Shown here piece after piece: positions 13,140-53,053 of a stretch of 64,000 nt of DNA; the stretch's first letter is position 1; every line of letters starts with the position of its first letter. The stretch is from Octopus sinensis (Eukaryota), in the NCBI RefSeq assembly GCF_006345805.1, contig NC_043017.1:15252001-15316000 (forward strand), read 5' to 3'. Position numbers and translations under genes: made by a program. Below the pieces are notes generated by a model that had not been told where the DNA came from, searched no databases, and saw nothing but the letters and a program-made list of their open reading frames with translations.

Positions 13140-13209
13140 AAGGAGTTCTGAGCTGACGAAGGAAATGTCGATTTGACTAATCTAGAAACGTACGTTCTCA
13201 AATAACCTT
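13140..13209 (+). ncRNA. Type I hammerhead ribozyme (array unit 1), predicted cleavage after GUU at 13196
   Basis: CTGACGA 13153-13159; helix II GGA/TCT plus GTC/GAC; GAAA 13185-13188; palindromic helix III ACGTACGT; helix I TCTGAG/CTCAAA (one mismatch), then a 3x3 loop and outer AAGG/CCTT. Confidence 0.75.
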
Positions 13210-13698
13210 TGCATTTGTGATTTTTTAATGTTTTTACCCCCATACCTTCGTGAGTTGACTTGAGCAAACACTATATGAGAGAGATTTTCTTTAAGTATTA
13301 GAAATAGTTTAAAATTTTTTTTTAGCTGCTATTTCTAATGAGTTCAGTATGTGGCAAAGTAATTTATTTTACTAAGCCCTTTTATATAATGTAATAATTT
13401 GAATTTGCCTTAAATGGTCCCTTTACATACTGAATACTTGGTGAAATTGATTAATAATTAATTAATTTTACCCTCAATTGTTGAAATTATAATTCATTTC
13501 TCTCTGTTTAATGCTTCGGTTTTTACCGATAAAACATAATGTTTGCCAATTTTAACCCACGCTGGTGGCAAGGGGAGAGCAGAAATTCTTCGCTTGCATA
13601 TTTTGAATTTGTTAGCACTGTTAGTTCGAGCAAATTTCCGGAAGTGATAAGAAGCCAAAAGGGTATGCTCCCACTTTCAGTGTTCCCAAATCCGAATC

Positions 13699-13768
13699 AA
13701 GGAGTTCTGAGCTGACGAAGGAAATGTCGATTTGACTAATCTAGAAACGTACGTTCTCAAATAACCTT
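13699..13768 (+). ncRNA. Type I hammerhead ribozyme (array unit 2)
   Basis: Same motif as unit 1; core CTGACGA at 13712-13718. Confidence 0.75.
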
Positions 13769-14253
13769 TGCATTTGTGATTTTTTAATGTTTTTACCCCC
13801 ATACCTTCGTGAGTTGACTTGAGCAAACACTATATGAGAGAGATTTTCTTTAAGTATTAGAAATAGTTAAAAAATTTTTTTAGCTGCTATTTCTAATGAG
13901 TTCAGTATGTGGCAAAGTAATTTATTTTACTAAGCCCTTTTATATAATGTAATAATTTGAATTCGCCTTAAATGGTCCCTTTACATACTGAATACTTGGT
14001 GAAATTGATTAATAATTAATTAATTTTACCCTCAATTGTTGAAATTATAATTCATTTCTCTCTGTTTAATGCTTCGGTTTTTACCGATAAAACATGTTTG
14101 CCAATTTTAACCCACGCTGGTGGCAAGGGGAGAGCAGAAATTCTTCGCTTGCATATTTTGAATTTGTTAGCACTGTTAGTTCGAGCAAATTTCCGGAAGT
14201 GATAAGAAGCCAAAAGGGTATGCTCCCACTTTCAGTGTTCCCAAATCCGAATC

Positions 14254-14322
14254 AAGGAGTTCTGAGCTGACGAAGGAAATGTCGATTGACTAATCTAGAA
14301 ACGTACGTTCTCAAATAACCTT
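14254..14322 (+). ncRNA. Type I hammerhead ribozyme (array unit 3)
   Basis: Core at 14267-14273; differs from units 1 and 2 by a 1-nt deletion in the helix II terminal loop. Confidence 0.75.
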
Positions 14323-14635
14323 TGCATTTGTGATTTTTTAATGTTTTTACCCCCATACCTTCGTGAGTTGACTTGAGCAAACACTATATGAGAGAGATTT
14401 TCTTAAGTATTAGAAATAGTTAAAATTTTTTTTAGCTGCTATTTCTAATGAGTTCAGTATGTGGCAAAGTAATTTATTTTACTAAGCCCTTTTATATAAT
14501 GTAATAATTTGAATTCGCCTTAAATGGTCCCTTTACATACTGAATACTTGGTGAAATTGATTAATAATTAATTAATTTTACCCTCAATTGTTGAAATTAT
14601 ATATATATATATATATATTATATATATATATATAT

Positions 14636-49507: not shown

Positions 49508-49612
49508 GAGATCTTTAAGTGGAGGGTAACTTCTGAACTACAGGTGAGTGAGATCTGTAAGTGGAGGGTAACTTCTGAACTACAGGTGAGTGAGATCTGT
49601 AAGTGGAGGGTG
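49508..49612 (+). repeat. 42 bp tandem repeat, 2.5 copies
   Basis: GAGATCT(T/G)TAAGTGGAGGGTAACTTCTGAACTACAGGTGAGT units start at 49508, 49550 and 49592. Confidence 0.95.
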
Positions 49613-51610
49613 ACTACCGAGGACACCATTTTGGTTTTAGAGTCACAATGAATTGGTAAATTAAAGCTTAAATTCCCAACCAGCCATGAAGATCTGACTG
49701 GGGATGAATAAAAAGCAGGTAGAATATGGGTGTCATCACTTTAATATAGCGGTAAAAGCCGATGTTAGACAACAAGATACAATACACACACACACACACG
49801 CACATCTTATCATTCACTCAAACATATACACCACCCTCTTTCTTTCACTCTCTCTACTTCCCTCTCTCTTCCTCCTCTTTTTCTCTCACTGTCTGGATTA
49901 ACACAGAAGAGCGAGAACTGGAACGATAGTCTCATGTTTAGCAATATTGTGACATCTCCGACCATGTTTCGCTCTTATTAAACCACATCAGCCAAGCATC
50001 CCCGAACCATGGTTGTGAAATGTCAGCGGAATTTATGAAGAGATTTGTTTCCAATGCAGCCATGGGCAACCTTATTCATGCTTGAATGATTTCGATAATG
50101 AAGGAAGAAGAGGATCAAGCAGATTTAGATTAACAGAATCTGTCTGGATTTGACGCAGCAGGTGCTTTGTTGACGTGTGACTGGCTCACTGCCATCACAA
50201 CCACCACCGCAACACTATCAGATATCACGACCACTGCCACTAGCACAATAACCATCCATATACAATCACAAAACAAAATCATAATGAATGTCATCACATC
50301 TCAGACAAACAGCACACATCTACTAAACACCGATCTCATTTCTATCGATTCATCCATCTATCGCTCTATCGTTTGTTTATCTATCTATCTGCTTCCCTCT
50401 CTGTTTATCTCTCTCCCTTTCTGTCTATCCATCCATCCATCCATCCATCCATCCATCTATCTATCTATCTATCTATCTATCTATCTATCTATCTATCTAT
50501 CTATCTATCTATCTATCTATCTATCTATTTCTCTATCAATCTATGTCTGTCTGTCCGTCCGTCTCTCTATCGACCTATCTATCTATCTACCTAGTCTGTC
50601 TGTCTGCCTATTTTCTATCTATTTATCTATATCTCTGTATGGTTGCCTATCAGTTTATCTACATTCATACATAGTACTAAAGCTTGTGTGTCTATGTGTG
50701 TGTGTCTGGTACTATAGCAATAATAATAATAATAATAATAATAATAATAATAATAATAATAATAACAATAATAACAACAACAACAACAACAACAACAACA
50801 ATATTAACATAATAAATCTAATAATGACGATGATGATAGTAATAATATTCTTACACCGGCCACTAACTCTGTTTTCACTATATCATGTCCATTGCTGTGT
50901 GTGTGTAGGCGCGCGCACGCGTGTGTGTGTACCGTGTGCTGCTGCCAACGACCTCAGGTAAAGTTCGTTAGGTGAGGCTGTTTAATTAGAAACACCAGGT
51001 TAATCATACATTTCTATTGAATTAATAATTAGATTAAATACAACCGGCTTTGCTCTAAAAACATCATTATCATCATCATCATCATCATCATCATCGTTGC
51101 CCATCAACCGCTCGTGCCAGACTTCTTCGTCTTACACACACACACACACACACACACACACACACACACACATACAATAAAATAAATGAATCTCAGCCGA
51201 GTATTCAGATTTTCAATCAACTGAGCTGCCTACTCATTGAGCTGTTTTCTAAGATTATGTATGGATAGACACACACACACATATGTGTGTATATATATAC
51301 ACGCATACGTATAGACACACTTATACATACTTACATACATACATAGATACATATATATATATATATATATATATATATATAATATATATATATATATATA
51401 ATATATATATATATATATATATAATATATATATATTATATATATATATATTTATGTATGTATCTATGTATATATATATATATGTATATATATATATTTAT
51501 GTATGTATCTATGTATGTATAAGTATGTATAAGTGTGTCTATACGTATGCGTGTATATATATATATATATATATATATATATATATATATATATATATAT
51601 TATATATATA

Positions 51611-52436
51611 TATAAAAATATGGTAAAGTAAAAAAATTCACTTTACCACACACCGAACTTTTCAGAAATAGCAGCCAAAAATTTGGCTATTTCTACAACT
51701 GCAAGTAAAAGTCTCCAGACAATGCATACTCAGAAAATAACTCACATAGGTATAAGGGAAATTTTTATAAATTAATACTTCAAATATACCGTAAATGGTC
51801 TTTTTACATACCGAATACTGCTTGGTCGAATTGATTAACAATTAATTAGTTCTACCCTTTTTTACTGACAATATAATGCTTTCTCTCCAAGAATTTGAAC
51901 TACAGTTTTTGCCTCTGTAGGAATGTACTACTCTATGACTCACGTGGGTGGACAGGGAGAATGATAGATCTCATTTGTATTTTTGGATTCGCTAGTACTG
52001 GTTGTCTGGCATGGTTTGTCCGATGTTACAGATATCGGACGGGTATGTTTGATTCTTAGTATTTTCAAATCTAAATCAGAAGAAATCTCTGAGCTGATGA
52101 AGGAAAAGTGGCGTTTAACCCACGAATCCAGAAACAGGCTGTCCTCGGGTATCTTATATGGATGTGATCTTTCATTTTTTTCCCTTATACCTATGTGAGT
52201 TATTTTCTGAGTATGCATTGTCTGGAGACTTTTACTTGCAGTTGTAGAAATAGCCAAATCTTTGGCTGCTATTTCTGAAAAGTTCGGTGTGTGGTAAAGT
52301 GAATTTTTTTACTTTACCATATTTTTATAAATTAATACTTCAAATATACCGTAAATGGTCTTTTTATATACCGAATACTGCTTGGTCGAATTGATTAACA
52401 ATTAATTAGTTCTACACCTTTTTTACTGACAATATA
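51611..52436 (+). mobile_element. Hammerhead element: 560 bp unit with 115 bp terminal redundancy and a 151 bp inverted 5' arm, in (TA)n
   Basis: 51761-51875 repeats at 52321-52436 (period 560); 51611-51761 is the reverse complement of 52179-52329; partial homology to the 13 kb array units. Confidence 0.88.
52080..52155 (+). ncRNA. Type I hammerhead ribozyme, predicted cleavage after GUC at 52143
   Basis: TCTGAG-CTGATGA(52094-52100)-A GGA AAA GTGG CGTTTAAC CCAC GAA TCC A-GAAA-CAGGCTGT-C-CTCGGG. Confidence 0.85.
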
Positions 52437-52456
52437 TATATATATATATATATATA

Positions 52457-53053
52457 TATAAAAGTAAATAAATGGCACAACGAAGCACCGATATTTACTG
52501 GAAAATAGCGAACGTAATAAATACGACGCTAATGTATAGCTTCACTGCGCATGTACTAGTAGAGATGCGTGTGTGCAACAAACATGAAAAAAATTGTCTT
52601 ACCTCTAGGAAGAACATCTGAAAAATATAAAACCTAGAAACGGATAATGCAGTACCGGTTTCAGATTCTTCAAAATACGTTTGCCAACGTATATTTGATT
52701 TATCTTCATCAGCTGCATATGCCTCGACAATATTTCAAATGTTGCCACATCTATGCCAGTGCACTCGTTTGAACGCCAAAACGTTAACAGAACGAGAACA
52801 GTGAAGAAGTTCCAATGAAAATAGTAATGCAATACGAGAGTATTGCTTTCCAGTAAAGGATAGCCCGTGAGGGTAAAATTATACATAAGACAATTTTTTT
52901 CATGTTTGTTGCACACACGCATCTTTACTAGTACATACGCAGTGAAGCTATACATTAGCGTCGTATTTATTACGTTCGCTATTTTCCAGTAAATATCGGT
53001 GCTTCGTTGTGCCATTTATTTACTTTTATATGTATAATTTTACCCTCACGGGC
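52457..53053 (-). mobile_element. Hammerhead element: ~430 bp unit plus an inverted 5' arm with a 25 bp junction duplication
   Basis: 52457-52601 is the reverse complement of 52886-53030; 52863-52887 is the reverse complement of 53029-53053; 3' end in (TA)n. Confidence 0.85.
52642..52723 (-). ncRNA. Type I hammerhead ribozyme, predicted cleavage after GUA at 52653
   Basis: Minus: ATGCAG-CTGATGA-AGAT AAA TCAAA T ATACGTT GGCA AACGTAT TTTGA AGA ATCT-GAAA-CCGGT-A-CTGCAT; fully canonical core, palindromic ACCGGT helix III. Confidence 0.88.

Follow-up and report, generated by a model that had tools for sequence, protein, structure and literature searches.

Two clusters in a 64,000-nucleotide stretch of the Octopus sinensis genome (RefSeq assembly GCF_006345805.1, contig NC_043017.1, positions 15,252,001 to 15,316,000 of the forward strand; hereafter the window, whose own numbering is used) contain six copies of a type I hammerhead ribozyme motif. 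They fall at four loci, A to D, the first with three copies and the others with one each, and every locus belongs to a short element associated with (TA)n microsatellites; a truncated Penelope-like element (PLE) lies between the clusters. An original prediction, made from the letters of the sequence, had described these loci as four divergent elements sharing one extended, possibly undescribed hammerhead fold supported by covariation. The analysis reported here indicates that the motifs are genuine, non-random and, between A and C, apparently selected, that their carriers are probably retroelements dependent on PLEs, and that the periphery of the fold is less novel than had been proposed.

Core, periphery and apparent selection of the hammerhead motifs

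Hammerhead A can be written as AAGG AGU UCUGAG CUGACGA A GGA AAU GUC-GAUUU-GAC UAA UCU A GAAA CGUACG U U/CUCAAA UAA CCUU, with the slash at the predicted cut, and on a reading of the sequence the same layout is shared by C and, on the minus strand, by B and D. All six copies possess the type I core, namely C3 U4 G5 A6 N7 G8 A9, G12 A13 A14, the A15.1-U16.1 pair and a nucleotide other than G at H17; N7 is either C or U, and H17 is U in A, C in both B and C, and A in D. Three helices surround this core, of which helix I is open-ended: helix I has 5-6 pairs, helix II has 3-4 pairs followed by a distal stem, and helix III consists of 1-3 pairs plus a palindrome. None of the four motifs has G10.1-C11.1, the stem pair that is conserved most strongly in hammerheads. 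Instead, A, B and C oppose an A to an A at this position, just as the original prediction had noticed for three motifs in four, and D has an A10.1-U11.1 pair, together with a long distal helix II and ACCGGU as helix III. By sequence all six copies are genuine type I hammerheads, and self-cleavage is predicted for them. The minimum free energy (MFE) z-scores of the isolated motifs are unremarkable, D excepted.

Two details of the periphery had been drawn too neatly. A helix I of 6 bp throughout is right for the layout, but A forms five of the six pairs, with one C·A mismatch, and two of the pairs in C are G·U. The outer stems, said to be closed by G-C in every case, are present but short (4, 3, 3 and 2 bp) and their positions are not conserved between A and C, so that they constitute weak evidence.

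The presence of the motifs does not depend on reading by eye. A descriptor comprising CUGANGA and GAAA, the A15.1...U16.1 H17 arrangement, and minimum lengths of 3 bp for helix II and 4 bp for helix I matched exactly six sites in the 64-kb window and no others, and these are the same four loci and six copies, with CUGAYGA...GAAA...UH and the helices noted originally. In 300 dinucleotide shuffles of the window, the mean number of matches was 0.09 when helix I was required to have 4 bp or more and 0.007 when 6 bp or more were required, against 6 and 3 observed. In addition, a covariance model (R1) was built from A, B and C only, with D left out. Searched against the window, R1 retrieved D end to end (32.6 bits, E=1.7e-6), and the best background match had 14 bits (E=0.33). 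Minimal PLE hammerheads with a perfect core obtained only 11.9 bits under the same model. Because such hammerheads reach only about 12 bits, the score of D reflects the common periphery and not the core alone; the claim that the four loci share more than their core is thereby upheld.

The clearest evidence for selection comes from the comparison of A and C. These two are homologous over the whole 559-nt unit, from cut site to cut site, with 67% identity, whereas for B and D local alignment detects no similarity outside the motif with A/C, between the two, or with PLE untranslated regions (UTRs). The six motifs therefore lie where they had been placed but represent three independent families (A/C, B and D), not four. 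Between the hammerheads of A and C all 11 fixed core positions are kept and N7 is the sole core difference. Changes in the stems amount to two double compensatory ones, four single ones that preserve the pair and zero that disrupt it. In helix I, AAA of A is replaced by GGG opposite UCU, which converts U-A to U·G twice and mends the C·A mismatch to C-G; in the proximal helix II, G·U becomes G-C; in the distal stem C-G becomes G-C and one pair is gained; and in helix III a G-C is replaced by A-U. Given the compensatory changes and the intact core, the hammerheads are apparently selected, the selection being seen between A and C. The view that they are of type I, under selection, and have a helix III that is minimal and palindromic holds to this extent.

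The same cannot be said of the covariation claimed across all the elements. MAFFT alignments of the raw motifs misplaced the register of D and of the 3′ halves of both A and D, and a manual, N-padded structural alignment of A to D (A2) was used instead for the pair counts. In A2, 94% of the cells are paired; in controls with the 3′ partners shifted by one to three columns this share is 27-45%. Both sides have changed in 16 of 30 pairs; since A2 was fitted to the fold and mixes unrelated families, these counts are not proof of phylogenetic covariation. It is important to note that the families are unalignable outside the motif, and for this reason the cross-family covariation is not phylogenetic.

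Table 1. Hammerhead motifs, the elements that carry them and the Penelope-like element of the window; the coordinates of hammerheads A to D are those set by the covariance model.
Feature	Position	Strand	Description	Score or evidence
Hammerhead A, copy 1	13140..13209	+	Predicted cut after U17, 13196/13197	R1 63.6 bits, E=2.2e-15
Hammerhead A, copy 2	13699..13768	+	Predicted cut 13755/13756	Same sequence as copy 1
Hammerhead A, copy 3	14254..14322	+	Predicted cut 14309/14310	1-nt deletion in distal helix II loop
Hammerhead B	14852..14924	-	Predicted cut after C17 at 14865	R1 65.4 bits
Hammerhead C	52079..52156	+	Predicted cut after C17, 52143/52144	R1 81.5 bits
Hammerhead D	52640..52727	-	Predicted cut after A17 at 52653	32.6 bits, E=1.7e-6, model built without D
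Element A, tandem array	13038..14598	+	One 5′-truncated copy and two full units, 554-559 bp, (TA)n on both sides	
Element B, single copy	14645..14932	-	Between two (TA)n tracts; 3′ end probably near 14708	
Inverted 5′-truncated partial copy of B	15099..15213	+	95% identical, runs into (TA)n	blastn
Element C, partial tandem	51776..52432	+	3′ part of one unit, then full 559-nt unit, ends in (TA)n	
Inverted partial copy of C	51608..51761	-	98.7% identical, directly upstream of forward copy, adjoins (TA)n	
Element D, unit of ~427 nt	52461..52887	-	3′ end next to (TA)n, 52432-52459	
Inverted partial copy of D	52886..53053	+	Spans unit-to-unit (tandem) junction	
Penelope-like element, 5′-truncated	34200..35232	+	(TA)n on both sides; C-terminal linker, GIY-YIG endonuclease open reading frame and 3′ UTR kept	
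Minimal hammerhead in PLE 3′ UTR	35070..35108	+	U3-A8 core variant	Relaxed descriptor scan

Carrier elements and their surroundings

The elements that carry the motifs have the anatomy of PLE-type insertions, in which a partial tandem is accompanied by an adjacent inverted 5′-truncated copy. A is an array of one truncated and two full units, 98.7-98.9% identical to one another (blastn and repeat search), and B, C and D are each accompanied by a partial copy in inverted orientation. Three hammerheads in tandem are found in A, one each in the partial tandems C and D, and one in the single copy of B. Every element terminus that could be assessed abuts (TA)n, and C and D adjoin one and the same tract. 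The units are non-coding, with short open reading frames (ORFs) only and a GC content of 33-37%; those of A and C measure 559 nt and that of D about 427 nt, which is outside the 150-400 nt range of retrozymes. As circular RNAs, A, C and D are predicted to fold strongly, with MFE z-scores against shuffles of -5.4, -7.1 and -4.8, respectively. The value for B is +0.6, and B looks like a fragment. RNAcofold of two copies turned every hairpin into a duplex and is uninformative on the double hammerhead, though the optimum for B resembles one. That several non-autonomous families carry the motif, as the original prediction had it, is borne out by the A/C, B and D elements.

Local alignment found no homology between the elements beyond A/C, and no significant alignment to five PLE 3′ UTRs. 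A spurious 136-aa ORF over D, used as a protein query for further copies, gave no matches, and a scan of metagenome contigs of the Joint Genome Institute (JGI) with the A/C box TCTGAGCTGAYGAAGGAAA gave 24 chance matches, in unrelated and mostly coding sequence, with zero hammerheads. Within the A/C unit, conservation is highest (75-80% identity) outside the hammerhead, in the hairpin UAGAAAUAG...CUAUUUCUA and the sequence downstream of it to about 13470. This hairpin lies at 13299-13337 and again at 13858 and 14411, with a counterpart in C at about 52243-52282, and its region suggests a second functional RNA element in the A/C units.

The PLE is represented by its C-terminal and 3′ parts. It has the linker KKCGRPNCATC (CX4CX2C) and an endonuclease ORF (34487-34948), with a frameshift upstream. 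The Pfam match of this ORF to GIY-YIG has E=0.007, below the cut-off, and a protein search gave eight homologues, with E from 1e-72 to 1e-14 and no worse than 1e-46 in six cases; GIY-YIG is found in four of the eight and PF26215 (HTH_animal) in three. This PLE is a candidate relative of the autonomous partner of the elements. The linker and a CxxC...H...H pattern give it a Neptune-like look, a clade resemblance by pattern only. Its minimal hammerhead, GAGAAAU UUGAAAA GUUAACAC GAAA CCGG U A AUUUCUU, belongs to a U3-A8 core variant that has been published (PMC4209133), and has the same helix III and cleavage nucleotide as D (GAAACCGGUA). This 10-nt box is the sole sequence that the elements share with the PLE 3′ UTR, and it is found in D only. 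Relatives of the PLE on L001 and L026 also have 3′-UTR hammerheads and ends in (TA)n.

Some observations on this PLE lineage can be added. Its 3′ UTRs have in common a GAAACCGGU box (GAAACAUGU in L001), located at 35070-35108 in the window, 1231-1269 in L026, 1722-1750 in L027, 979-1010 in L028, and 6645-6683 and 2824-2875 in L001. At core positions 3 and 8 there is apparent covariation: L026 and L001 have C-G, the window has U-A, and L027 and L028 have A-U; helix I is weak in the last two, and A3-U8 was not found described in the hammerhead literature searched. L001, a metagenome contig that also has a PLE homologue, contains a further typical minimal PLE hammerhead at 11664-11705 (minus strand; AAGU CUGAUGA U GUAGU...ACUAC GAAA CUAG UC ACUU), with an extra base after A9 and ACUAGU as helix III. 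A U3-A8-type descriptor match in AT-rich DNA of the window (42991-43052, minus strand) was judged to be a chance one.

The rest of the window is mostly transposable-element and microsatellite sequence, with no evident host gene. Three LINE-like elements (long interspersed nuclear elements), at 9094-12330 (plus), 36287-38534 (minus) and 57261-60278 (plus), have apurinic-type endonuclease, reverse transcriptase or zf-RVT domains, and two near-identical ORFs of 139 aa lie inverted about 54 kb apart, at 2012-2431 (minus) and 56591-57010 (plus). A GC-rich stretch at 33826-34100, directly upstream of (TA)n, resembles the head of a short interspersed nuclear element (SINE) derived from transfer RNA (tRNA) (ggcctagtggttagggc...ggtttcgattccc); ARAGORN calls no tRNA in it. 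Dozens of sub-threshold Rfam matches to mir-297, mir-466, mir-3149 and mir-1277, with up to 69 bits and E=1e-10, were rejected as (TG/TA)n microsatellite artefacts and not microRNA genes; such sites lie at 3345-3855, 8846-9057, 22292-22860, 32757-32900, 41342-41781 and 43984-44872, among others. Finally, an assembly gap (28621-28720) separates the two clusters. It touches no motif or element, so that continuity across it is irrelevant to the finding, whose span is a bounding box only. The gap, of 100 N, starts at the end of a (GATA)n tract (28561-28720 with the gap), has a different, CA/TA-rich repeat on its right flank and probably corresponds to an unresolved repeat.

Origin and activity of the elements

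The explanation that we consider probable is that A/C, B and D are short, non-coding, AT-rich retroelements dependent on PLEs, either retrozyme-like or non-autonomous PLEs derived from pseudo-long terminal repeats (pLTRs), and equipped with type I hammerheads. Their tandem or partial-tandem genomic copies would be transcribed as multimers, which the hammerhead would cut after H17 into RNAs of unit length (559 nt for A/C, about 427 nt for D) with 5′-OH and 2′,3′-cyclic phosphate ends, and these unit RNAs could be circularised by a host RNA ligase. The compact RNA would be copied by a PLE reverse transcriptase, perhaps of the lineage found in the window, and inserted at nicks made by the PLE GIY-YIG endonuclease in (TA)n microsatellites; insertion driven in this manner would yield 5′-truncated tandems and inverted partial copies. 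A and D, with ACGUACGU and ACCGGU as helix III, respectively, are expected to work as double hammerheads that require two copies, because this helix is unable to form a hairpin. B (AUC-CAG-GAU) and C (ACA-GGC-UGU), with 3 bp and a triloop, may act as monomers. Helices I and II would probably dock by the usual contact, that of U1.7, at the start of internal loop 1, with the 3′ A of loop 2, which a nested hairpin here turns into an internal loop. That A/B and C/D are pairs on opposite strands would be explained by the accumulation of independent insertions in the same microsatellites.

Several published observations agree with this explanation. The arrangement of a partial tandem with an inverted 5′-truncated copy has been drawn for PLEs (PMC8557442, Fig. 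2), (TA)n targeting has been reported in the Hydra and Naiad clades of PLEs, and a CX2-5CxxC endonuclease linker has been proposed as the cause of the microsatellite bias in the Neptune clade (PMC8557442). Published traits of PLEs and retrozymes include hammerhead pairs on opposite strands with 100-700 bp between them, a helix III that is palindromic and dimeric action (PMC4209133), and the circular RNAs of retrozymes have likewise been described as low in GC and highly self-paired (PMC7229834). A 2026 preprint derives animal retrozymes from the pLTRs of PLEs (10.64898/2026.07.22.740005).

Other features of the locus weigh against such an origin. With A10.1·A11.1 in place of the most conserved stem pair, and with U17 and the C·A mismatch of helix I in A, activity may be low or lost. 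The units, of 427-559 nt, exceed the 150-400 nt usual in animal retrozymes, and A is the only true multi-hammerhead tandem, B, C and D having one motif each. No similarity links the elements to the PLE 3′ UTR, except for the GAAACCGGUA box of D, and the PLE of the window cannot itself be the mobiliser, because it is truncated and has a frameshift. The motifs reach the gathering score of no Rfam hammerhead family, and cleavage, transcripts and circular RNAs at these loci are predicted ones.

Three quite different origins have to be considered. If the elements were dead, the motifs would be inactive relics whose pattern persists because the insertions are young; the identity of the A copies (98.7-100%), consistent with one recent event, the mismatch and U17 of A, and the lone fragment B, with a fold no better than that of shuffles (z +0.6), are what such a history would leave. 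It is nonetheless improbable, as A and C have diverged by 33% with the core intact and with compensatory changes in the stems, and the same geometry is kept in three unrelated families. Very improbable is a second origin, from tRNA-derived SINEs that are transcribed by RNA polymerase III, mobilised by LINEs and provided with a hammerhead like Sm-alpha of Schistosoma. For this speak the several LINE-type reverse transcriptase/endonuclease ORFs in the window and a box-B-like GTTCGAGC in unit A, but this string is not conserved in C, ARAGORN detects no tRNA-like sequence in the window, the elements have neither poly(A) nor simple LINE-type tails, and their termini lie in (TA)n, with the tandem and inverted structures typical of PLEs. 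The probability that a short consensus was matched by chance, in DNA rich in AT and in repeats, is practically nil. A window so rich in microsatellites, with its many spurious Rfam microRNA matches, invites the suspicion, which is refuted by the shuffle control (0.007-0.09 expected, 3-6 observed) and by model E-values of 1e-6 to 1e-20, with a clean gap to the background.

A different question is how new the hammerhead itself is. The strongest form of the claim, a distinct undescribed subclass in which a new contact, joining internal loops 1 and 2, is needed for activity and A10.1·A11.1 is the signature, is in our opinion unlikely. It draws on the 3x3 A-rich internal loop, distal stem and A10.1 common to three unrelated families, on the placing of D about 20 bits above true minimal hammerheads by a cross-family model, on the failure of Rfam to find A and C and its sub-threshold scores for B and D, and on the hairpin loop 2 and G10.1-C11.1 of the canonical type I hammerheads in the literature compared. 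Against it, the contact nucleotides fit a general published motif, and internal loop 1 (Schistosoma) and internal loop 2 (the chrysanthemum chlorotic mottle viroid's minus strand, CChMVd(-)) are each known (PMC2632901); helices II that are long and irregular, with the 5′ base unpaired, have been reported in PLE hammerheads (PMC4209133); and only three independent lineages, in one 64-kb window, are available. A weaker form, which we hold as a tentative and somewhat doubtful possibility, would be a lineage-specific, uncatalogued variant defined by a 3x3 A-rich internal loop 2 (created by a nested hairpin of variable length), the A·A opposition and docking of two internal loops, and captured by, or convergent in, at least three unrelated PLE-dependent families.

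If the ribozymes are indeed active, they would add to the type I repertoire a variant whose A·A at 10.1/11.1 and hairpin nested in loop 2 make it escape current Rfam models and standard descriptors, and the hammerhead and retrozyme content of such genomes would be under-counted. One window would moreover link retrozyme-like elements, (TA)n-targeting PLEs and minimal hammerheads, in support of animal retrozymes as non-autonomous derivatives of PLEs. The A·A position and the removable distal hairpin would also offer handles on the role of the 10.1/11.1 pair and of loop 2 topology in folding. The general picture of the nature and role of hammerheads would not change.

Comparison with known hammerheads and retrozymes

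At gathering thresholds, Rfam gives no hammerhead match in the whole window. With E<=10 the whole-window search returns only the microsatellite-driven microRNA look-alikes, and searches for hammerheads were therefore made on small sub-regions. B is then matched end to end by Hammerhead_1 (RF00163) with 24.5 bits (gathering score 34), and D by Hammerhead_HH9 (RF02275) with 18.5 bits (gathering score 52), including the UAY strand after helix I; A and C have no hammerhead match at E<=10, even in searches of 121-161 nt. The HH9 consensus has UAC after a 6-bp helix I, and in the four motifs, too, a U (U1.7) opens the 3′ strand of loop 1. The model search and Rfam comparison suggested with the original prediction have thus been run on the window, the former retrieving D and the latter remaining below gathering scores throughout.

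The canonical type I hammerhead of metazoans has a helix I of 6 bp, a helix II of 4 bp, interacting loops and a helix III of 1-2 bp with a palindromic loop (Cervera & de la Pena, PMC4209133), a definition that fits the motifs found here. Their contact nucleotides also agree in sequence with the general loop contact UNmYN/RNnA, in which a U:A reverse-Hoogsteen pair is formed (Dufour et al. 2009, PMC2632901), so that docking is predicted: U1.7 is present in four of four, the 5′ strand of loop 1 ends in U, U, C and U, and internal loop 2 of A to D has AAU, AAA, AAA and AAA as 5′ strand and UAA, AAA, GAA and AGA as 3′ strand. A mismatch at 10.1/11.1 has precedent in the U·U of natural hammerheads (PMC3088659; axolotl HHR_Amex2, PMC7229834).

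The animal non-LTR retrozymes (lacking long terminal repeats) of coral, mussel and axolotl (Cervera & de la Pena 2020, PMC7229834) resemble these elements in being non-coding, low-GC tandem units with one type I hammerhead each, a weak palindromic helix III, a self-paired predicted unit RNA, a 6-bp helix I and a helix II of four positions. The elements described here differ from them in their larger units (427-559 versus about 150-400 nt), in the restriction of multi-copy tandems to A, in the hairpin nested in loop 2 and in the A·A or A-U at 10.1/11.1. The minimal hammerheads of PLEs (Cervera & de la Pena 2014, PMC4209133) share with them PLE-style insertions, palindromic positions 15.2-16.2 and loop 3 with dimers as the expected active form, a helix II longer than usual whose 5′-terminal base is unpaired, and pairs on opposite strands a few hundred bp apart; D and the PLE copy in the window have GAAACCGGUA in common as well. 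On the other hand, PLE minimal hammerheads lack the features of a loop-loop contact and have an uninterrupted helix I, whereas in the motifs here the canonical helix I of 6 bp is preserved and leads into an internal loop.

For the Schistosoma mansoni Sm-alpha hammerhead a crystal structure was reportedly obtained by Martick & Scott in 2006. Like the motifs of the window, this ribozyme is of type I, with a 6-bp helix I followed by an internal loop and a closing stem, a loop 1 whose 3′ strand starts with U and whose 5′ strand ends in a pyrimidine, a helix II of four positions and an A-rich loop 2 ending in A (PMC2632901). It differs in its simple CAAAUA hairpin loop 2, its G10.1-C11.1 pair and its carrier, a tRNA-derived SINE. 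In CChMVd(-), as predicted for the motifs here, the partner of the contact on the side of helix II is an internal loop that is followed by a further stem and has a 3′ A pairing with the 5′ U of loop 1; the viroid hammerhead is, however, of type III, comes from a plant viroid and has a hairpin, rather than internal, loop 1 (PMC2632901). Schistosoma thus combines an internal loop 1 with a hairpin loop 2, and CChMVd(-) a hairpin loop 1 with an internal loop 2 (PMC2632901).

A subclass defined by its periphery is not supported, in the form proposed, by this comparison. Schistosoma and HH9 show the same canonical type I arrangement of a 6-bp helix I, an internal loop and a closing stem (PMC4209133, PMC2632901); U1.7, the pyrimidine of loop 1 and the 5′-A...3′-A of loop 2 fit UNmYN/RNnA, and an internal loop 2 is known from CChMVd(-) (PMC2632901). 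A10.1·A11.1, the pairing of two internal loops and the hairpin nested in loop 2 were not found described in the hammerhead literature searched. Judged by sequence, the original proposal is therefore partly supported: the periphery would represent the standard contact in a new topological combination, a peripheral variant and not a new class, in which A10.1·A11.1 and the joint occurrence of two internal loops, 1 and 2, are possibly new.

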